Shown in pieces: positions 1 to 17,757 of a stretch of 17,768 nucleotides of DNA. Each line of letters opens with the position of its first letter. The first letter of the stretch is position 1. Source of the stretch: Histomonas meleagridis 2922-C6/04-290x (Eukaryota > Protista > Parabasalia); the NCBI GenBank assembly GCA_020184695.1, contig JAANOX010000118.1, forward strand, positions 1-17,768, in the 5' to 3' direction. A program made the translations under genes and the position numbers. The notes beneath the pieces were generated by a model. It had not been told where the DNA came from, did no database searches, and saw nothing but the letters and a program-made list of their open reading frames with translations.

Positions 1-206
1 GAGTAGCTGCTGGTTCGGTTACGTATCTTTATTTACTAGTTTATATGAAAAGTATGAAACGTTATTCAAAACCGATTTTCCTTCATTTTTTCTGATTTAT
101 AACTTTTAATAGATTATTTAGAATAACTTTTCAATGTAATAAACCACCATTTTTTCTGAGAAATTGATGGACGATTCGAGTTGAATCTGTAAATTTCCCT
201 CTTGAA

Positions 207-812
207 ATGAGCGGTATCAGTGCGACAATACAAGGATTCATTTCATTGTGTGTTAACCCTGTTGGTAAATCATGCCTTGTCTTCGTTTTGGTGAGAGTCG
301 TTTCAACCAATTCATGATGTTTACAAATCTGGATGATATCACCTCAATTCAAATTAATAAAGAATTGAAGATAGAAACATTAAAGTGCCGTCTGGATACA
401 GCGGGTCAAGGGTTTCAGATCTGTACGAGGTTGTCTCAGATAGCGTTTCCGTACGTCATCATCTTGATATATGAATAACCTTCCTTTGAAAAGGTGGAAG
501 ATTGGATCAAAGATGTTTGCATATTAGCACTCTAGAAGATTGTATGATAGCTGTATTTGGAAATAAACATGATTGCGAGGCACAAAAGACACTGCACCAC
601 ATCACTGGGTCAGCAGAGCTTGCTGACCGACACGGAATAATGTTTGCCCGACATCAGCACTTTAATGGGGATCTAATGCTGAAAATGCATTTGATCTATC
701 GCATACCATCTGTCTGTTTGTACTGAAAAGAAAAATAGAGAACAATCCCCAAATTTTCACAGTTCAGATCTCATAGCATTCAAAATGGGAAAATGAAACC
801 ACAGGTTGCTGA
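207..812 (+). pseudogene. Rab-family small GTPase pseudogene (multiple frameshifts and stops)
   Basis: The GTPase boxes occur in the correct order and spacing but across changing frames: VGKSCL (261-278, G1), DTAGQ (395-409, G3), SFEKVEDWIKDV, GNKHD (559-573, G4), TSAL..G.NAENAF (651 onward, G5). A C-terminal ...TTGC* ends at 810-812. Confidence 0.85.
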
Positions 813-1645
813 GGAATCGCTTTAAAAGAAATATGCAATTATCTTGCTCTATTTTCAAACCTCAAAATTTTAGACAAACAAAACATTTGGCCAAATGTAG
901 TACCATATTCGGTGTGTGTATCTCGATGTGAGTTTTCTTCCTGTTTCCTACTCTGAATTTCCAGAAGGCTGAGAAAAGAGACTCCGATTCAGTCTATTTT
1001 ACCTTTTGTATAAATGAATGGATTTTAATCGTCTGACTTGGTGATAGTGGTTTTGATTGACAGCTGAGACGGAACTACTCTCTTGTCTTCTAACATTTAA
1101 AATCACGCGTAACTACACATACGACATAAGGCATGACTTCTAGATTATACAATAACAAATGTATTTACTTATAATTGTTATAATAAGTTTTCTTTTAATA
1201 CCTATGGCATACAATTTATACATGGAGGAGTTCCAAAATGTATACATTATGAATTTGAATGAAATATTTTGTGGTAAAAAGGGTTGAAAACATTGTTCAA
1301 GTTTGCTAACATATTAATTGAGTATTGATATGGCTTAGATAATAAAAATTGCTTATTTTTCCAAATTTACTTTTAATATTATATTGAAGATATTTCTACA
1401 TAATTTCTTAAAATTTCATAAAATCAATTCAACACACATGTAAAACAAGAGTTAAGATATACCTTTAGAATAAATATATAAACATTATGTTTTGATAATT
1501 TGAAATTATCGATTTTTATAACCCCAATTAATTTTGAAAATGTGCTTACACAACAACCATTTATAACTGAAATTTTCCAAATTAAACAAATTTAACACTT
1601 TGATTGGATCACCTTCTTCGTCTGATATAGGGTAAATCTTTCTCG

Positions 1646-2793
1646 CTATTTATATCTGTATAAGATGTTCCCCGAAATGGCTCTTGTTCTGTTTTCCTGT
1701 AAATTCATATTTAAGGGATCAATGTATGTTAAACTATTTCTTGTTGTTTTGCGATGCTTTCTATGATGTGGTTTTTGTTGTTGTGCATCGGTGGTTGTAT
1801 CTGTAGGTGTTGTACGATGTTTCCTTCTTCTTTTCTTTTCTGCTGATTCAAAATTGCTAGTAATTGAATTTGATCGACGATGTTGTAAACCAAATGCTGC
1901 TATTGTTACGCTTTTCCTGTTACAAGTTTCATATTGTATTTTGCTGAGGGATGTAGTTGTATCCTCTTTATTTTCTGTTCGAAGAATATGTGAGGCACCC
2001 CGCGGGGTTAAAAGAAAACGGAGCTTCAAGAGCAGTTTGAATAGCTGCGGGAAGAATTGGAATGAAGGATCCGGGCCATGTAAGTGGATAAAGAAGCCCA
2101 AGAAGGGAAAATGCAGTATCACTTAGAACCTTGGCCGAGGATGAAACAACAATAATTCTGTAGTCAAAAAGCATTGCAACGGTACAGTGAAGAATATCTG
2201 TGATATTATACTTCGAAAAAAGATATAAATAAATTTTCAAAAGTTCATTTGATGGACTAAGGTGGTCAATACTTTTAATGTTGAGAAGAGAAGCAGCAGC
2301 TGTGTCTAATGTATTATCATATGGAAATACATTAAGTTTTAAATTGATAACTTCCGAAATATTCTTTTTGCTGAATTTTATCTAATCCTGCAATGTTACT
2401 TATTATCTCTGAATAGAGTGTAGGGTGATATCTTTTTGATATGAGACAATAAGCATGAATTTTATTATCTTCTGCAATATGATAATGAACAAAAGCAAAA
2501 AGTAATTTGCGATCAGAATCAGTAAATGCGAAGTTAAATTGCTCAAGATTTTTTATATCGCATTTTTCAAAAGGAAAACAAAATGTTTTGAGATTATTGC
2601 TAATTGATTCTGGAACTTCTGATGTTTTCTGATAAATTGAAACAGATTCAGATCCTTGGACTACGTTATAAACATATTCGAATAGAAAATCCTGCTCTAG
2701 TTTAAAAATGAAAGCATCCTTTTTAGCGGTAAAATATCCCTGATTGTAAAGTTTACATTCAAATTTCATAGAAAATAAAATATTTGTGAGCAT
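1646..2793 (-). pseudogene. DENN-domain (Rab GEF-like) gene broken by two frameshifts
   Basis: ORF 2332-2832 has uDENN-like motifs (TFCFPF, FNFAFTDSDRKLLFAF, YCLISKRYHPTLY). A 1-nt shift near 2359 gives the open reading ISEVINLKLNVFPYDNTLD...KIYLYLF into ORF 1968-2240. That ORF has core-DENN motifs (LFDYRIIVVS, LLGLLYPLTWPGSFIPILP, LEAPF). A second shift near 2000 leads into ORF 1646-2122 (GASHIL..., basic low-complexity tail). The start and 3' end are uncertain. Confidence 0.78.
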
Positions 2794-3669
2794 TTTATTA
2801 CTAGTTGTCAGACATTTGTATTTGGTTTGCAAACATTTGTTAACGTCAAAAACCTATAAAAATATTCATTGAGTTATATCAAAAAGGTCAATTTCACATA
2901 TATGTTATCTTGTAAGTTACATGAGAAAATCATTTTTTGTTTTTATTATATATAATGTTTTAACTTTCCAATACCGATAGCTTTGTTCAAACGTGGTTGA
3001 ATCTAACCAACGTTGTGGATATCTAAATGTATAACTATTATATTTATTAACATTTGTTAATTCTTTTTCATATGAAACTTTCATGTTAAATCTTAATTTG
3101 TATAATTTTCTTCTCTAGAAGATAAATGATTATCAGTTTTGTACATTTAATGAAAAATAGTCATAACAATAACCAATTTGCTAGAATAAAATTCATTGTA
3201 AAAATCTTTTCAGAATAAGAATAGTGTTGTAAATCAAAGTAAAACTTCGATACATTATCTAATGGAATATATTTCACAACAATCGATAGTATTGATAAAT
3301 CTTTCATATTACATATGGCAGGTATCATTTAATAATAAATCCTTGGATAATCGTTTTACTTATAAATAATATTTTAGTGAAAGAATTAACTGTTAAACAG
3401 TTAAACATTATGAATATGCATTATTTAAATCAAATGTTTAGCAAAATTAACACTATAATGGATTTGTAAAAAAATATAAATCGTTTGTTAGTAAATATAA
3501 TTAATGGTTATTCTATTAATCATAATGCTTTGAAAAATCATATTCATAATATTATTAACAATGATTTAACTATTAATGGTAGTCTTGTAACAAATAGTAT
3601 TAACGGATATTATATAGGGTACGGCAAAACAATAGAAATTTCTCATACATATCTCGCTACATATATAAT

Positions 3670-4600
3670 TAGTGACCAGTCTCCATGCACTCCCAAACCA
3701 AATCGAAAATATGTTTTATTAACAAATTTAGAATAAATTTTTTTCAAAATTATATTATCTGATATCAGAAAAAGCCAAAGCTCATTAATAAAAAGACCCT
3801 CTTTCACAGCATATTGTTTCCAACACATTCATGGATGAGAATAAAATCAAAAATGTTTATTTAAGTCAAATTTGGTAAATTGACCAAGATTAACTTATTG
3901 TATCAGGGCTATTGTCTTCCCAAGCATTGCATTGAGAATAATTCAAATATGTTTCGAAATTGTCTTGTTTCATCCATCTTGATGAGTTATGGTATGAAAT
4001 GTTATCAATCTTTGTTCTTTCGACCAAATTAGTCGTTTCTCTAGCTATATGAAACAATGGCAGCTTGGTGCCTGCAAATATAAAACTGAGGTTATCACAG
4101 AGGTCATAGTTTCTTCTGAATCAAGAACTATGATATTAACAGCATCTGATCCAATATGTGCCCATGTCTTTATAAAATAAGACAGTATATGCTATGGTGT
4201 TTCATCACAGTTGATGATTTGATTAACTGGTTTAGTTTCAATCAGGTTTCTCACGGCTTTCATTTAAACATCAATTGAAAATTTCTTCTGCTACGCCTGT
4301 TACGTTTTTTAAGATCAAATACAAAATTTTGAACTAAACATCATATCTGGGATACATGATTAATAGAGTCTGTTTTTTGTAATAGTATATCTTGTTGAAT
4401 AAAATTCGTTCTGATTAAAACTTAAATTGATTTTCCTTCATTATCTGTGAAGACTTTATGATAAGCTCCATGAACAGATCCAACATATGGTATCCATTCC
4501 TTATCCATTTCCCATTTGTGGTACCATCCACAGATTCAGGAATGTGATACTGTTTTGATAATCGAACTTTTACAATACCAATAGATAAAAAATGGGATTA
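3670..4600 (-). mobile_element. Decayed pogo/Tc5-like (DDE_1 family) DNA transposase
   Basis: Manual minus-strand translation across frameshifts gives SVDGTTNGKWIRNGYH, then IINCDETP* (D at 4204-4206, with TAG where W is expected), KTWAHIGSDAVNII..DSEETMTSV, AGTKLPLFHIARETT (4075 onward), SYHNSSRWMKQDNFETYL and IFDLVWECM. This motif order is typical of DDE_1 transposases. No terminal inverted repeats were identified. Confidence 0.72.
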
Positions 4601-4802: not shown

Positions 4803-6357
4803 TTAATGGTTAAAATTGTAAATCTCTTTAGGCTTCCCATTAATATGAATCAATTCCATCTTTGTATGATTATTTCTAGACTCGTACATAAGTGCTGTCC
4901 ATATTTTAAATAATTTCCAAATATTATTTTGAAATATAAAATTATTAAAAAATATTTTAATCAAAACAAATAAATATTTTTAGCATTAATATCAATTCCT
5001 TCTTGTTCAAGAAGTAATTTAACTATTTCTGTGTAACCATTTTCAGATGCTAACATAAGTGCTGTATTAAATATTTTAAATAATTTTCAAATATTATTTT
5101 GAATTTCCAAATTATTAAAATAAATAATAAATAAAACAAATAAATATCTTTAGCATTAATATCAATTCCTTTTTGCTCCAAAATATATTTGACAAGTTCC
5201 GTGTTTCCTGATCCTGATGAAAATACCAATATATCTTGCGGATTTGAATGCTCTTTAAGAAAATATTCAACTAAAAAAATATTTCCAATATTTGCTGCTT
5301 CATTAATGATATTTTCATTAATTTTCATTCCTTCTTTTTCTAAATATGTAAAAATTTCATAATTAAAATATGAAACACATTTTTCTCCTAATTTTTTTTA
5401 ATTTGTTAATATCTTCAATTTTATTTTCATAAAGAAAATGAAAAATATCATTTCGATGAAATTCAATTGCTGTTTCATATGCATATTTAAATGACGAATG
5501 ATTTTGTTCACATAAATGAATGATTTCTTCATTTCCACCTGCAACTGCATATTCACCTGTATTTTTTATATCAGAACCATTCATAAGTAAATATTTAAAA
5601 CATTTAACAGATCCAAAAAATGCTGCATAATCAATTAATGTAACATTTCTATTTATAAATGAACATCTTTCATAAAGTGATGGTTCAATTTTTTGATTAA
5701 AATTAAAATTTGTTTGTGATGATATTTCTTGAAGTTTTTCGATTTCATCATTTCGAATTATTTTTGCAATTTCATTTGGATTATGTCCTTCTTTAACATA
5801 TTTCTTATGAAGTTCCCAATCATTCTTTGATAGTTCTTCATAATTTTTTAAAAAAATTGATTCTAAAGGTTGAAAATATTTTCGTTTACTTTGTTTTTCT
5901 GTTTTATATTGTGCAAAATATTTTGAAATATTATTATTTTTTATATCTTCATGAGGTATTTAGATCAATCATTTTACTAATTTAGATAGTTTGATTCTTG
6001 TGATGCAATATTGCATATGTATCCAATGAAAAAATCAAATATTTTGGGATTACTTTTATCCATTTCTTCTTCTTTTGTTTGAATTGATTTCAAATAATTA
6101 ATATAAACAGAACTTTTGTTCTTTCGTGATACAAAAGCCATATAAATTAATTCACTAATATTAATATTAAATGAACGAGGGAAATTTGTGTCAAATAATT
6201 TCAGCGTTTGTTGAATTTATGAATTAAGATTTTCTTCAGTTAAATTAAATATTATATGTTCGAGCGAAAGAAGTGATTCCAGATAAATATTTTCACTTTC
6301 CTTTTCTGAATAATTTGTTGTCGTTGTTATTTGATCTTGGGTGATACCATTATCCAT
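4803..6357 (-). pseudogene. DUF3447/ankyrin-repeat gene, inverted paralog of 12879-15341, with spacer-interrupted ankyrin units
   Basis: ATG at 6357 gives MDNGITQDQ...ENIYLESLLSLEHIIFNL, with a TAA at 6217-6219 and further breaks around 5990-5850. Region 5846-5149 is nearly identical to 13325-14022. It is followed by a 77-nt spacer (5066-5142), the unit TALMLASENGYTEIVKLLLEQEGIDINAKNI (4973-5065), a 74-nt spacer (4899-4972) and a degenerate unit TALMYESRNNH...* ending at 4803. Confidence 0.85.
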
Positions 6358-9967: not shown

Positions 9968-12493
9968 ATGGTTAACTTCACGATCGAACAACTTCGTGCA
10001 GTTATGGACAAGAAGAGGAACATCCGTAACATGTCCGTTATCGCCCACGTTGATCACGGTAAATCAACACTTACCGATTCTCTTATCTCCCGTGCAGGTA
10101 TTATTTCTAACGATGCAGCAGGTGAAATGCGTTACACAGATACACGTGTTGATGAACAAGAACGTGGTATCACAATCAAATCCACAGGTGTTTCTCTTTA
10201 CTACACAATGCCAGATGATGAAGTTCCAGCAGATTCTGAAGGCAATGGTTTCTTAATCAACCTTATCGATTCTCCGGGACACATCGATTTCTCCGCTGAA
10301 GTTACAGCAGCTCTTCGTGTTACAGATGGTGCACTTGTTGTTGTCGATTGTATCGAAGGTGTTTGCGTACAAACAGAAACTGTTTTACGTCAAGCCCTTT
10401 CTGAGCGTATCAAACCAGTCGTTATTGTTAACAAGATTGATCGTTGCCTTTTAGAATTAAACTCTGACCCAGAAGAAATGTACCAAACATTCTCCAAATC
10501 CGTTGATAATGTCAACGTTATCATTGCCACATACACAGATGAAGAAGGTCCAATGGGTAATCTCACAGTTTCACCAGCCAAGGGTACAGTTTGCTTCGGC
10601 TCTGGTCTCCACGGTTTTGGCTTCACACTTACCAAATTCGCCAAGATGTATTCCGCCAAATTCGGTGTTCAACAATCCAAATTCATGCCACAACTTTGGG
10701 GTGAACGTTACTGGGATGCATCATCGAAGAAATTCCTCCACAAGTGCACAAACGATAAAGGCCAAATGCTCGAACGTACCTTCTGCCAATTTGTTCTTAA
10801 GCCAATAGTCACATTATCACGTGCTATCATGGCCGGAGAGAAGGCTAAGTACATGGAAATGTTCAAGAAGCTCGGCATCAAGCTTAGGGAAGATGAAGAA
10901 TCAATGGAAGGCCGTGAACTCCTTTCTGCTGTCTACCGCCGTTGGTTACCAGCTGCTGAAGCACTTCTCGAAATGATTGTCCTTCACTTACCATCACCAG
11001 CAGTTGCCCAAAAGTATCGTTGCGAAACACTTTACACAGGTCCAATGGACGATGAATGCGCCATTGCCATCCGTGACTGCGATCCAAACGGTCCATTAAT
11101 GCTCTACGTCTCCAAGATGGTTCCAACAACAGAACGTGGACGTTTCTATGCATTCGGACGTGTCTTCTCAGGTACAGTTGCAACAGGCCAACGTGTCCGT
11201 GTTATGGGCGCTAACTATGTTCCAGGCAGTAAAGAAGACTTACACGTCACAAACATCCAACGTACAATCCTTATGATGGGTCGTAAGGTCGAAAACATCC
11301 AAAACTGCCCATGCGGTAACACAATTTCATTAGTCGGTATTGATCAATACCTCGTCAAGTCCGGTACTATCACCACATCAGAAGTCGCATACCCACTCAA
11401 GGCTATGAAGTTCTCTGTCGCACCAGTCGTTCGTGTAGCCGTCGAAACTAAGGTAGCATCCGACTTACCAAAGCTTATCGAAGGTTTGAACCGTCTCGCC
11501 AAGTCTGACCCATGTATCCAAGTCTCCCATGAAGAAACAGGAGAACATATCATTGCAGGTGCAGGTGAATTACATCTTGAAATCTGTCTCAAGGATCTCG
11601 AAGAAGATTACGCAGGTGTTCCAATCAAGCGCTCTCCACCAGTCGTTTCATTCCGCGAAACAGTCACACAAACATCATCAGTTGTCTGCATGGCTAAGTC
11701 TGCAAACAAGCTCAACCGTGTCATGATGCAAGCGCAGCCATTAGGCGACGACTTGCTCAAGGCCGTCGAGTCCAACGAAATCACATCTCGTATGGATAAC
11801 AAGACACGCGCCAAGGAACTCGTCAACAAGTACGGATGGGAGCAAACAGACGCACGTCGTGTTTGGTCATTCGGCCCAGACACAACAGGTCCAAACTTAC
11901 TCGTCGATACCACCAAATCCGCCGAATACTTACAAGAAATTAAGGAGCACCTTGTCTCAGCCTTCCAAAACGCTACAAGAATCGGTGTCCTTTGCGAAGA
12001 GCCATTACGTGGTGTCCGTTTCAACGTCGTCGAAGTATATCTTCACTCTGATGCATCACACCGTAACGGAGGCCAAATTGTCCCATGCGGCCGTCGCGTC
12101 CTTTACGCCTCAGAGTACACAGCCGAGCCAACATTGATCGAGCCAGTCTACTTAGCAGAAATCACAGCACCATTGACCGTATGCGGTGGTGTTCACGGAG
12201 TTTTGTCAAAGCGTCGTGGAAAGGCATTCGACCAACAACAACGTGAAGGTACACCATTGATGGTCATCAAGGCTTATCTTCCTGTTATGGAATCATTCGG
12301 CTTCGATAAAGATCTCAGATCAGCTACATCAGGTCAGGCATTCCCACAAATGATCTTCGACCACTGGGAAAATCTCCAAGGTGACGCATTCGAAGATGGA
12401 AACCAACTCAGCGCTACAATTAAGGCTGTCCGTAAGAGGAAGGGTCTCTCTGAAAATATCCCATCACTCGACCACTACCTCGATAAACTTTAA
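9968..12493 (+). CDS. EEF2: Eukaryotic translation elongation factor 2
   Basis: 841-aa intact ORF with MVNFT...[20 protein letters not shown] (G1), [21 protein letters not shown] (G3), NKIDR (G4), domain [14 protein letters not shown] and a C-terminal RKRKGL...YLDKL. Codon bias is strong and typical of high expression (CGT, CCA, TTC, AAC, ATC). No introns. Confidence 0.99.
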
Positions 12494-12494: not shown

Positions 12495-12878
12495 TTTAAA
12501 TTAATAAATAAAAGCCTTCCTGCAAATTTTTCAAATATTTAATAATAATATTGTTGCAATGAATTGTTTTTGTTATCTATTTCTATTTATTTTCAATCTA
12601 TTTCACAAATTATTACATAAATAAAATTTCATTTCAGATTTATCACTTTTTGCACTTTACCATAAATTGACCGGTGTTGAAAATAGTGACCGGGCATAAA
12701 ACGATGACATGCTTCAAATTTGAATTGATATATCGGTTCTTTTTCTTAAAACCGTTAAGAATTGAAATTGTTCCAACCTAATATGGACTTGGATTCAAAA
12801 TTTAAATTCAAATTTCATCGGTTTTGACATTTTAACCTCATGAGTTCATTCAAAAAGTGAAGAAAGTCAATTTTCCAA

Positions 12879-13808
12879 ATGAGACCAAAGGAAAATTGCT
12901 ACTGGGAAACACTTCTATCAATAAGCCAAGCAATTTTTGGTTTGAATGAAGTAAATTCCTCCAAATCTTTAGGTTTAATAATCGACAAATTTGATGAAAT
13001 CCATCCTTTATCTTACGATTTAATTATTATTCAAATGATATATTATTCCTTTGTGATTAAAAATAATAACGCAGATTTATTTTTGAATATTATAAAAGAA
13101 ATAAGAGCATTTGAAGAGAGTAATAAAATCAAATCCAATATATTTGATATATTTGGTCGATTTCTTATCAATAAGTATACAAATGAATCATCTTATCTTC
13201 TTGAATCGATGATTGAACATAATTTTCTTGAACCAAATATTGTAAAAAACAACCAGAGTGCTTATTTTGTACATTATATGTCTAAAGAAAAATTAGCAAT
13301 CTTTTTAAGGGAACATGATTTTGTAAATTATGAAGAACTATCAAAGAATGATTGGGAACTTCATAAGAAATATGTTAAAGAAGGACATAATCCGAAGGAA
13401 ATTGCAAAAATAATTCGAAATGATGAAATCGAAAAACTTCAAGAAATATCATCACAAACAAATTTTAATTTTAATCAAAAAATTGAACCATCACTTTATG
13501 AAAGATGTTCATTTATAAATAGAAATGTTACATTAATTGATTATGCAGCATTTTTTGGATCTGTTAAATGTTTTAAATATTTACTTATGAATGGTGCAAA
13601 TGTTAAAAATACAGGTAAATTTGCAGTTGCAGGTGGAAATGAAGAAATCATTCATTTATGTGAACAAAATCATTCGTCATTTAAATATGCATATGAAACA
13701 GCAATTGAATTTCATCGAAATGATATTTTTCATTTTCTTTATGAAAATAAAATTGAAGATATTAACAAATTAAAAAAAATTAGGAGAAAAATGTGTTTCA
13801 TATTTTAA
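12879..13808 (+). CDS. DUF3447-type ankyrin-associated protein, N-terminal part (309 aa as read; the homologous reading continues in the +1 frame)
   Basis: Motifs typical of trichomonad DUF3447/ankyrin proteins: IIRNDEIEKLQ, FNQKIEPSLYE, TLIDYAAFFGSVKCFKYLLMNGA, FAVAGGNEEIIHLCEQ, AIEFHRNDIFHFL. Removing one A from the A8 run at 13772-13779 gives ...KLKKLGEKCVSYFNYEIFTYLEKEGMKINEN, which fuses to ORF 13843. Confidence 0.85.
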   Translation: MRPKENCYWETLLSISQAIFGLNEVNSSKSLGLIIDKFDEIHPLSYDLIIIQMIYYSFVIKNNNADLFLNIIKEIRAFEESNKIKSNIFDIFGRFLINKYTNESSYLLESMIEHNFLEPNIVKNNQSAYFVHYMSKEKLAIFLREHDFVNYEELSKNDWELHKKYVKEGHNPKEIAKIIRNDEIEKLQEISSQTNFNFNQKIEPSLYERCSFINRNVTLIDYAAFFGSVKCFKYLLMNGANVKNTGKFAVAGGNEEIIHLCEQNHSSFKYAYETAIEFHRNDIFHFLYENKIEDINKLKKIRRKMCFIF

Positions 13809-14067
13809 TTATGAAATTTTTACATATTTAGAAAAAGAAGGAATGAAAATTAATGAAAATATCATTAATGAAGCAGCAAATATTGGAAATATTTTTTTAG
13901 TTGAATATTTTCTTAAAGAGCATTCAAATCCGCAAGATATATTGGTATTTTCATCAGGATCAGGAAACACGGAACTTGTCAAATATATTTTGGAGCAAGA
14001 AGGAATTGATATTAATGCTAAAAACTATGTTTATTATAATTATTTTATATTTCAAAATAATATTTAG
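13780..14067 (+). CDS. Continuation of the DUF3447 gene: first ankyrin repeats, ending at a TAG inside the first spacer
   Basis: LGEKCVSYFNYEIF...EAANIGNIFLVEYFL...SSGSGNTELVKYILEQEGIDINAKNY. The TAG at 14065-14067 is in frame with the next unit, TALMK, at 14089. Confidence 0.7.
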   Translation, partial: LGEKCVSYFNYEIFTYLEKEGMKINENIINEAANIGNIFLVEYFLKEHSNPQDILVFSSGSGNTELVKYILEQEGIDINAKNYVYYNYFIFQNNI

Positions 14068-15375
14068 AAATTATTTATATTATTTGAAACAGCACTTATG
14101 AAAGCATCTTCAAAAGGTCATACAGAAATAGTTCAATTACTTCTTGAACAAGAAGGAATTGATATTAATGCTAAAGATATTCATTTGTTTTATTTGAAAT
14201 TTATTTTAATAATTTGATATATCAAAATAATATTTGGAAATTATTTAAATAATTTAATACAGCACTTATTTGGGCATCTGAAAATGGTCATATAGAAATA
14301 ATTAAATTACTTCTTGAACAAGAAGGAATTGATATTAATGCTAAAAACTATGTTTATTATAATTATTTTATATTTCAAAAATAATATTTAGAAATTATTT
14401 ATATTATTTGAAACAGCACTTATGAAAGCATCTTCAAAAGGTCATACAGAAATAGTTCAATTACTTCTTGAACAAGAAGGAATTGATATTAATGCTAAAG
14501 ATATTTATTTGTTTTATTTGAAATTTATTTTAATAATTTTATGATATATCAAAATAATATTTGGAAATTATTTATATTTTTTAAAACAGCACTTATTTTG
14601 GCATCTTCAAATGGTCATACAGAAATAGTTCAATTACTTCTTGAACAAGAAGGAATTGATATTAATGTTAAGGATATTTATTTATTTTATTTGATATTTA
14701 TTTTGATAATTTTATATTTCAAAATAATATTTAGAAATTATTTATATTATTTGTAACAGCACTTATGATAGCATCTGGAAATGGTCATACAGAAATAGTT
14801 CAATTACTTCTTGAACAAGAAAGAATTGATATTAATACTAAAAATATTCATTTGTTTAATTTAAAATTTATTTTAATAATTTGGAAATTCAAAATAATAT
14901 TTAGAAATTATTTAAATAATTTAATACAGCACTTATTTGGGCATCTGAAAATGGTCATATAGAAATAATTAAATTACTTCTTGAACAAGAAGGAATTGAT
15001 ATTAATGCTAAAAACTATGTTTATTATAATTATTTTATATTTCAAAATAATATTTAGAAATTATTTATATTATTTGAAACAGCACTTATGAAAGCATCTT
15101 CAAAAGGTCATACAGAAATAGTTCAATTACTTCTTGAACAAGAAGGAATTGATATTAATGCTAAAGATATTTATTTGTTTTATTTGAAATTTATTTTAAT
15201 AATTTGATATATCAAAATAATATTTAGAAATTATTTATATTTTTTAAAACAGCACTTATTTTGGCATCTTCAAAAGGTCATACAGAAATAGTTCAATTAC
15301 TTCTTGAACAAGAAGGAATTGATATTAATGCTAAAGATATTCATTTGTTTAATTTAAAATTTATTTTAATAATTT
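14029..15375 (+). repeat. Tandem array of eight 93-nt ankyrin modules alternating with conserved 60-80 nt AT-rich spacers
   Basis: ACAGCACTT (TAL) starts at 14089, 14259, 14413, 14586, 14756, 14926, 15079 and 15249 (periods 170, 154, 173, 170, 170, 153, 170). Each module reads TALxxASxxGHxEIxxLLLEQExIDINxKD/Nx. The spacers are 60, 77, 61, 80, 77, 77, 60 and 77 nt, plus a partial spacer after 15341. Confidence 0.97.
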
Positions 15376-16196
15376 AATATATTATAATATAGGATTCAAT
15401 AGGACATGCTCGGATCGATTTTTCTAATAATTTCATAAATAGTTATATTTTTTAATAGCATATATTAGTTTATAATTAATTTTTTAGAAATGTATTTCTG
15501 TTTTATTTTAGAAAAAAATCAGTATATTTTAAGAGGAACCGTATTTCCAGGGCATAACGGTCGTCATAAACGGTCGCATCCTCCTTCAGCGTTAAAAGCC
15601 CGCCAAAATTGATATCACAAAACAATTGTTTGGGTCTTTTATATCATATACAGATAATCTCAAATTACAATGGATTAGTAATCGCGCTTGAAGAGTACTC
15701 TTCATAATTTAAATATAGGATATATTTCACTTATGGGTGCATTTTTATTCTTAACTATAACAGAAAGGATGAAACACTTCACAACAATGTTTTATATATG
15801 TTTAATCATAAATATAGAACAAGATCCAACAAATTATTTATGATATTCCACCGATTATTGCAGAAGAATATAGTACTGTTTATGAAATCATTCAAATGTG
15901 ATAATTTAACAAACAATTTTCCTCATTATTATGGATAATTTAACTCTGAAAGCTTTCCAATTTATTAATATTAATATTTTTTTCTATGTAATAATAATAA
16001 TTTTTATGTTTCTCAGAACATTCATATAATTTTTTTGTATGAAATTTGCATACGAATTTCATATAATATATATTGACATTTTTCTAATATAGATTCGAAT
16101 CGCTACATGAAAATGGGCAAATCTTTTTAATTGATTCATCTTTTATTGTTGTCTTTTTTTCATTAAATTCAGTGATGTTTCTCCCTTTCAAGTTAT

Positions 16197-17009: not shown

Positions 17010-17237
17010 AAACCCATTTTATAATAGACATAAGTGACGTATCAAAATATATAAATAATTTACAAATATTATATTGAAATAAATTTTATAAGAAAACAAA
17101 CAAATATCTTTAGCATTAATTTCAACTCCTTAATGTTCAAGAAGTAATTGAACTATTTCTAGATTCCCATTATTAGATGCTTTCATAAGTGATGTGTCAA
17201 ATGTTTCGAATTATTTCCAAATATAATTCTGAAACAT
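17010..17237 (-). pseudogene. Third, diverged relic of the spacer-interrupted ankyrin array
   Basis: On the minus strand: a spacer hairpin (17201-17237), the unit TSLMKASNNGNLEIVQLLLEH*GVEINAKDI (17103-17195, 31 codons, one TAA), a 62-nt spacer (17041-17102) and a degenerate unit TSLMS... from 17040. Confidence 0.85.
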
Positions 17238-17716
17238 AACATTAATCACCCACTTTCGATCGTGATCTGTATTTTTAATAAGTCGAGTTTCTGTGAGATA
17301 TAATATAAATAATGTAAGAAGAAATGTTAAGCCATATATAGTAATTAAAATCAAAGTTTAATATAATTATTTTGTTATTAGATTAAAAAAATTATGTATC
17401 AATCAACGGGAAAATCATTGTACCTCTATATAATTGATACATCAATAGATTGATATATATAATAGGAACAAAATTATTATACTATTATAATTAGAATAAC
17501 CATTATTTGTATTATTATAAAAAAAATGATTTGTAGGGAAATTTTATAATATTCAAAATATCCAAATTTAACAAAAAAAAGAAAATTTTATTTAAGGGTC
17601 CATTCCACTAAATTGAATAGAAAACGATGAAGAAAGGAAAAAGTACGTAAGTAAATCATTTAATTCCAAGACGGTAATATCGTTTTCGATAGCGAAATCG
17701 AAAAAAGATGGGAAAA

Positions 17717-17757
17717 ACACACACACAGCGGGGCCTCCATTCCACACACACACAGCG
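17717..17757 (+). repeat. Direct repeat ACACACACACAGCG x2
   Basis: Identical 14-mers at 17717-17730 and 17744-17757 in a GC-richer patch at the window edge. Confidence 0.9.

Follow-up and report, generated by a model that had tools for sequence, protein, structure and literature searches.

How can a gene be read when each of its repeats is followed by a spacer that breaks its frame? The question is raised by an ankyrin array in a 17,768-nt stretch of contig JAANOX010000118.1 of Histomonas meleagridis (hereafter the window). A first-pass annotation, made from the sequence alone, had described eight clean 31-codon ankyrin modules separated by homologous spacers of about 90% A+T, each introducing a stop, a frameshift or both. 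The spacers (S1–S8) are as described: they measure 63, 80, 64, 80 + 3, 80, 80, 63 and 80 nt (i.e., 63, 64, 80 or 83 nt), are homologous and about 90% A+T, and every one of them disrupts the frame or holds a stop. The modules (M1–M8; TAL...AKD/N) indeed contain no stops or indels, but they comprise 30 codons each, and M1, M3 and M7 share one sequence and M2 and M6 another, while M4 is nearly the same as M8; the array was therefore amplified recently and offers only about four independent sequences. Their identity as ankyrin repeats is indicated by the per-position conservation of the modules, by the hairpins that appear after the removal described below and by Pfam Ank/DUF3447 matches: the repeats are of 33/34 residues and display the TAL..A..G.....V.LL...G.D.N pattern and the D-x-x-G-x-T hairpin.

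The spacers prove to be composite, each consisting of a multiple of 17 nt plus whole codons (80 = 4 × 17 + 4 × 3; 63 = 3 × 17 + 4 × 3; 83 = 4 × 17 + 5 × 3), and TRF detects period-20 sub-repeats within them. The codons retained between the 17-mers of S1–S8 (YYRE, EDGN, YYRE, EYDGK, DYRV, KGRN, YYRE and EDRK) are the very hairpin that seems to be missing between the repeats. The first-pass annotation had thus located the spacer correctly at the hairpin site, but had taken it for one unit replacing the hairpin, whose codons in fact persist singly between the 17-mers; their being scattered in this way is why the frame could not be restored sensibly with any one pair of ends. Its estimate that 51–71 nt must be removed per spacer agrees with the actual amounts of 51 (3 × 17) and 68 (4 × 17) nt. 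When the 17-mers are deleted, the frame from 13774 is open over 361 codons and includes all modules (Table 1). The extra A of S3 lies inside a homopolymer, and homopolymer errors are seen elsewhere in the assembly. A single GT...AG or other end pair per spacer was rejected as a candidate: no such pair preserves the reading frame throughout the copies, and relatives have GG where the window has AG.

Table 1. Features of the ankyrin locus and of its surroundings in the window (mini-intron, 17-nt unit between codons)
Feature	Position	Strand	Composition or basis
EF-2 ORF, intronless	9968-12493		841 aa, 47% G+C
N-terminal ORF of the ankyrin gene	12879-13808	+	Pfam DUF3447 match
5' part: DUF3447/ankyrin-type N-terminal region to first module M0 (13936-14025)	12879-14025	+	
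Eight ankyrin modules M1-M8, 90 nt each	14089-15338	+	module alignment, repeat periods
Starts of M1-M8	14089, 14259, 14413, 14586, 14756, 14926, 15079, 15249	+	
S1	14026-14088	+	TAT, then mini-introns 14029-14045, 14049-14065, 14069-14085 with TAT, AGA, GAA (YYRE)
S2	14179-14258	+	mini-introns 14179-14195, 14199-14215, 14219-14235, 14239-14255; GAA GAT GGA AAT (EDGN)
S3	14349-14412	+	S1-like, YYRE; middle mini-intron 14372-14389 of 18 nt (A5 vs A4)
S4	14503-14585	+	mini-introns 14503-14519, 14523-14539, 14546-14562, 14566-14582; GAA TAT GAT GGA AAA (EYDGK)
S5	14676-14755	+	mini-introns 14676-14692, 14696-14712, 14716-14732, 14736-14752; GAT TAT AGA GTA (DYRV)
S6	14846-14925	+	mini-introns 14846-14862, 14866-14882, 14886-14902, 14906-14922; AAA GGA AGA AAT (KGRN)
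S7	15016-15078	+	S1 copy; mini-introns 15019-15035, 15039-15055, 15059-15075; YYRE
S8	15169-15248	+	mini-introns 15169-15185, 15189-15205, 15209-15225, 15229-15245; GAA GAT AGA AAA (EDRK)
Array tail	15339-15390	+	mini-introns 15339-15355, 15359-15375, codons AAA, AAT, then unrelated sequence and stop
Inverted, 5'-truncated duplicate of 13325-14269	4888-5846	-	94% identical
Decayed single unit	17029-17248	-	77-82% identity to the array

Upstream of the array lies an ORF whose closest named relative in a protein search is a Histomonas meleagridis protein (64% identity). At the A8 run near 13772 (13765–13772), the RNA contigs of four runs are one A shorter than the assembly, which fuses this ORF to the frame opening at 13774; the discrepancy reflects a homopolymer error in the assembly or else transcript slippage. 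As part of the overall reading argued below, we consider it very likely that the locus is one gene, coding for a DUF3447/ankyrin protein of about 660 residues. Its joined frame ends in ...AKDKNIL and a stop, so the array has no C-terminal capping repeat. The tandem array (14026–15375) shows periods of 153–170 nt and higher-order periods of 323 and 493 nt (TRF), and its eight modules would have expanded lately via unequal crossing-over on top of an older layout. The first-pass annotation had noted that the layout recurs elsewhere in the window; the recurrences lie at 4899–5145 on the minus strand and, in decayed form, at 17041–17237. The former belongs to the inverted duplicate, which features spacers of 80 nt (5066–5145) and 77 nt (4899–4975; 4 × 17 + 3 codons) and a capping module closing at a natural stop; the latter has an in-frame TAA inside its module and a 65-nt spacer that no longer parses into 17-mers. 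With its missing capping repeat and its truncated or decayed neighbouring copies, the array gene of the window may be degenerating. The Nei–Gojobori pN/pS across the modules is 0.64, a measure that does not separate the frames.

A protein search with the ORF running from a module into a spacer recovered relatives on metagenome contigs, of which L001–L008 were compared. Their modules are strongly diverged, yet open, and 22 of their 23 distinct spacers are exactly 80 nt long at a mean identity of only 69%, a constancy of length that rules out a merely broken, recently copied unit. Recent amplification of such a unit had been one of four options in the first-pass annotation, and a pseudogenic minisatellite was considered besides; the amplification is real, but it leaves both the spacers and their conservation in relatives unexplained. 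At offsets 18–20, 38–40, 58–60 and 78–80 of 22 related spacers, the codons read NDGQ, EDGW, KDGK, NNGK, KYGN, etc., with Gly at the third loop position in 19/22 and a single stop among 88 codons (TAA as the first loop codon, L002:25), and no other register of the related 80-nt spacers yields canonical hairpins. These retained codons are the least conserved columns of the spacer. After deletion of the 17-mers (and of one 18-mer in an 81-nt spacer), each related array becomes one frame that stays open until a natural stop or until the contig ends (184, 233, 240, 194, 123, 134, 474 and 464 aa, against 69–131 aa before), the arrays finishing in natural capping repeats or, in L003, continuing into a 190-aa C-terminal domain. 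Removal of the units restores a conserved open reading frame in the window and in the eight related contigs alike, and the conserved protein needs this removal. In the related organisms, the arrangement, the unit length of 17 nt and the sense of the retained codons as a hairpin are all conserved.

The number of units per loop is 0 (first junction of L007), 3 or 4 at a constant number of loop codons, which implies that gain and loss of units proceed by exactly 17 nt at a time. In L007 (1845–1870), the first inter-repeat junction lacks any unit (loop VMFE) and the next one has four. Both 81-nt spacers (L001:396–476 and L010:245–325) are one base longer because the T8 run of their first unit brings it to 18 nt; either removal tolerates 18 nt or these copies are impaired. 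L001:1–184 and L002:310–493, which come from different samples, lie in about 3.07 kb of identical sequence (one difference) in which an array unit has been swapped for another; array units hence turn over between strains.

Whether the units are taken out of the transcript can be read from RNA contigs of four runs (assembled contigs, not reads) aligned to 12600–15800. The intergenic segment 12600–12813 has a depth of about 0 in all four, which identifies the runs as RNA and not DNA. Numerous contigs span a spacer site but show 6–15 different letters there. Across S1, the RNA passes from 14028 to 14086 with TATAGA between (four of four runs). Across S5, it passes from 14675 to 14753 with GATTATAGA between, in runs X1 and X3 and with M4-/M5-specific flanks of 30–33 nt. 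Across S6, it passes from 14846 to 14256 with AAGGAAGA between, giving AAA GGA AGA and then AAT ACA, where the landing at 14256 is equivalent to 14923 because M2 = M6. The letters that replace the spacers agree to the base with the codon strings predicted for S1, S5 and S6, so that among the joints listed at least three of the five distinct spacer types have joined forms; the form predicted for S7 is the same as that of S1. The joined forms reach RNA word depths of 136–4246, similar to the unique 5' region of the gene, as against 4–68 in spacer-keeping contigs (e.g., an unspliced contig in run X4 that matches 15196–15274, at S8, exactly at depth 68). At contig level, gene sequence is thus lacking in the RNA of the same locus for S1, S5 and S6: the units are present in DNA and absent from the abundant RNA contigs, which keep precisely the string of single codons. 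The first-pass annotation had proposed a look at RNA for precise spacer removal, and the joined contigs of S1, S5 and S6, with their locus-specific flanks, display it. On the whole, we hold with considerable confidence that the ankyrin loop codons are single-codon exons and that the 17-nt inserts are excised from the pre-mRNA.

The joined contigs could, in a different reading, derive from spacer-free sister genes, with no excision taking place and the 17-nt insertions sitting in pseudogenes, i.e., in dead arrays accompanied by intact paralogues. The ankyrin family is huge and highly expressed, with word depths to 2 million and many RNA joints that bear other hairpins; moreover, truncation or decay has affected two of the three copies that the window holds, and the array itself was amplified recently, all of which would suit such an origin. 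Against it, the joined contigs carry M4-, M5- and M6-specific variants on both sides, and their ascription to normal-hairpin paralogues is wrong for at least three of them. Neutral decay, moreover, does not predict conserved loop codons, a 17-nt length or restored frames, whereas in the relatives the isolated loop codons keep Gly/hairpin residues and are G-rich inside 89% A+T with stops in only 1/88, the inserts are exactly 17 nt despite 30% divergence, and whole arrays, including the C-terminal domain of L003, are open only after removal. We accordingly regard an origin from paralogues as improbable. The reading of the arrays as silent cassettes, another of the options first listed, is not supported.

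The removal could instead take place in the genome, the 17-mers being cut out in some nuclei or cells in the manner of ciliate internal eliminated sequences (IES), with transcripts made from the processed copies. Short, AT-rich and precisely bounded inserts without GT-AG do recall the sequences eliminated in ciliates. However, DNA runs of the same organism contain the spacer-bearing words, a result which also shows that the spacers are not an assembly artefact, and the low-depth spacer-bearing contigs of the RNA runs are what would be expected of a precursor. Neither nuclear dualism nor programmed DNA elimination is known to occur in parabasalids. Elimination at the DNA level is accordingly a very improbable alternative to excision from RNA.

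A further proposal would leave the spacer in the message and have it translated as an aromatic insert of 21 to 27 residues in the downstream frame, entered at the spacer start by a ribosomal hop or a frameshift of −1. The 63-nt spacers are indeed in frame, public ORF calls read them as ...VYFNNLIFQNNIWNFFKLF..., and stops are depleted in the downstream frame relative to a simple neutral simulation. Yet that same simulation over-predicts stops in frame 0 too, stops occur in the downstream frame of 8/22 related spacers, and 51 nt of T-rich intron amount to 17 codons by arithmetic, with the apparently conserved W made up of the intron end TTT and the GG of the Gly codon GGA. AlphaFold gives the insert a pLDDT of 45–60, and neither a slippery site nor covariation of take-off and landing was detected. 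Most directly, the sequence is missing from the RNA, and the joined contigs refute translation of the spacer for the bulk of transcripts, leaving it a chance that we rate as minimal. Translational bypassing, known from phage T4 gene 60 and the mitochondrial byps of Magnusiomyces, likewise concerns short non-coding gaps within an ORF, with the gap staying in the mRNA and absent from the protein; here the RNA contigs are without the gap, and take-off and landing codons match no more often than by chance (p = 0.06–0.5). Among the four options first offered, recoding is not supported, and a non-canonical intron class is the one that the evidence favours.

Two narrower versions were rejected as well. 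The coding insert of the in-frame ORFs (P0032, etc.), with its stop depletion, is a by-product of 3 × 17 = 51, the neutral model being unreliable and the AlphaFold confidence low; neither a slippery site nor covariation backs a frameshift of −1 or a hop of 20 nt from one direct repeat to the other (spacer positions 1–8 and 21–28). An exhaustive profile search returned public short ORFs (P0032, P0073, P0147, P0179 and others, as well as L009:1–650) that run module–spacer–module in one frame; these in-frame ORFs are unspliced 63-nt spacers, and ...VYFNNLIFQNNIWNFFKLF... is a spurious conserved peptide between modules. In L009, TAG replaces the TGG of TALIWAS and a TGA lies within one mini-intron.

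What, then, marks the unit? The consensus of 111 mini-introns is A-T-T-T, nine mostly A/T bases and A-T-T-T, with a length of 17, rarely 18, and the best conservation at positions 3, 4 and 14–17. All 111 lie in phase 0, between codons, and their G+C content is 11%, compared with 35% in the retained codons. None of the 111 can be placed as GT-AG, even with equivalent placements allowed, in contrast to U2-type introns, and universal terminal dinucleotides are absent: a 5' AT is possible in 64/111 and a 3' TT in 81/111. An upstream codon ending in A pins the borders to AT...TT or AA...TT. The trichomonad type A and B motifs (GTAYGT-like at the 5' end, (A/T)CTAAC...ACAG at the 3' end; PMC12316389) are not seen and the position weight matrix has no CTAA, in agreement with the first-pass annotation. 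Nor do the units match the U12-type AT-AC pattern (5' ATATCCTT, TCCTTAAC branch site, 3' AC): their consensus contains neither motif, and their 3' end is TT, TA or TC. For structure-defined introns (bulge-helix-bulge, IRE1-type or euglenid), 27 spacers yielded no covarying set of pairs; such motifs are beyond what 17 nt of A/U can form, and an RNA helix or hairpin was rejected as a candidate for want of covariation. In the units, neither a conserved terminal dinucleotide nor a branch motif nor a covarying helix was found that could account for recognition; all that they have in common is their length and the U-rich ATTT ends.

The nonconventional introns of euglenids belong to nuclear pre-mRNAs, lack GT-AG and fixed border dinucleotides, vary in length and have ends thought to pair in a helix. 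The 17-nt units likewise lack GT-AG and fixed border dinucleotides, but their length is fixed at 17 nt, which leaves no room for a helix, and they show no covariation and stand in tandem. The ultrashort introns of the Mikrocytos, Stentor and Bigelowiella type are single introns scattered across housekeeping genes. Extreme shortness, near-invariant length, a conserved A+T-rich sequence and removal from mRNA are common to these and the Histomonas units, whereas the latter are without GT-AG (0/111), come three or four in tandem with 3-nt exons and have so far been seen only in ankyrin loops. The introns of Mikrocytos mackini, of 16–17 nt, are sequence-conserved, treated as spliceosomal and the shortest known of fixed length (PMC10245619); another study cites 15 nt for Stentor and 18 nt for Bigelowiella (PMC12316389), whose introns are likewise treated as ordinary spliceosomal ones. 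Trichomonad introns, from the same phylum, are of type A (56–196 nt) or type B (23–28 nt), with GT/AG, an extended 5' motif and a CTAA branch site that is merged with the 3' end; normally a gene has one of them (PMC12316389). Type B is likewise short and U-rich, but the 17-nt units show neither GT/AG, the 5' motif and CTAA nor the one-per-gene pattern. For the H. meleagridis genome, introns are reported to be scarce, with at most one per gene (PMC8529796). Microexons down to 3 nt, i.e., spliced single-codon exons, are on record for animals and plants (PMC8042270); those sit between long canonical introns and require special enhancers, in contrast to the runs of four single-codon exons spaced by 17 nt found here. 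In the literature on parabasalids, Histomonas, Dientamoeba and 17-nt introns, our searches turned up neither tandem 17-nt introns lacking GT-AG nor strings of exons with one codon each.

We envisage a four-residue loop between ankyrin repeats that would be broken up into exons of one codon each. A 17-nt insert would stand before every loop codon, and the inserts would probably be cut from the pre-mRNA one at a time and always between codons. Recognition cannot rest on the GT/AG ends, 5' motif and CTAA of trichomonads or on a helix, as these are absent; instead, the 17-nt U-rich unit itself might be measured or recognised. Three-base exons pose a severe problem for any known spliceosome, and the choice between an unusual use of the spliceosome and a different enzyme system is nearly balanced, tilting slightly toward non-canonical machinery. 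In a more tentative extension, which we would place somewhat below an even chance, Histomonas and its gut relatives possess a non-canonical RNA excision system with a 17-nt ruler (ATTT, nine bases, ATTT) that joins three-base exons, its units spreading and being lost by exactly 17 nt in ankyrin loops. The joined frame predicts the junction peptide ...INVKDDYRVTALMIAS....

If the excision reading is correct, nuclear introns would not need GT-AG or AT-AC ends, the assumption of a minimum exon size would fail and neighbouring introns would not need room for separate spliceosome assembly, all in a lineage thought to be almost intron-free (PMC8529796). Units repeating every 20 nt would offer a compact, testable substrate for how length could define an intron. 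On the practical side, gene finders mistake such genes for pseudogenes or annotate them as short ORFs, spurious peptides from unspliced 63-nt spacers are already present in public protein collections, and the ankyrin repertoire of Histomonas, an important poultry pathogen, is probably under-counted.

Several other features of the window were recorded. Searches of it found no Rfam match and no tRNAs. The EF-2 ORF stands out with its 47% G+C against 20–30% in the rest of the window. A DENN-domain-like gene on the minus strand (1600–2850) is spread over three frames that shift at short homopolymers (A5, C4), a pattern suggestive of indels in the assembly or of a pseudogene, not of 17-nt units. 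At the window end, two copies of a CACACACACAG motif (17715–17755), which resembles the 3' end of trichomonad introns but is without CTAAC, flank a G+C-rich stretch. Finally, the unique sequence 3' of the array (15376–15800) is covered by RNA contigs at a depth of 30–100 in four of four runs and may represent a 3' UTR or else belong to a transcript of its own.
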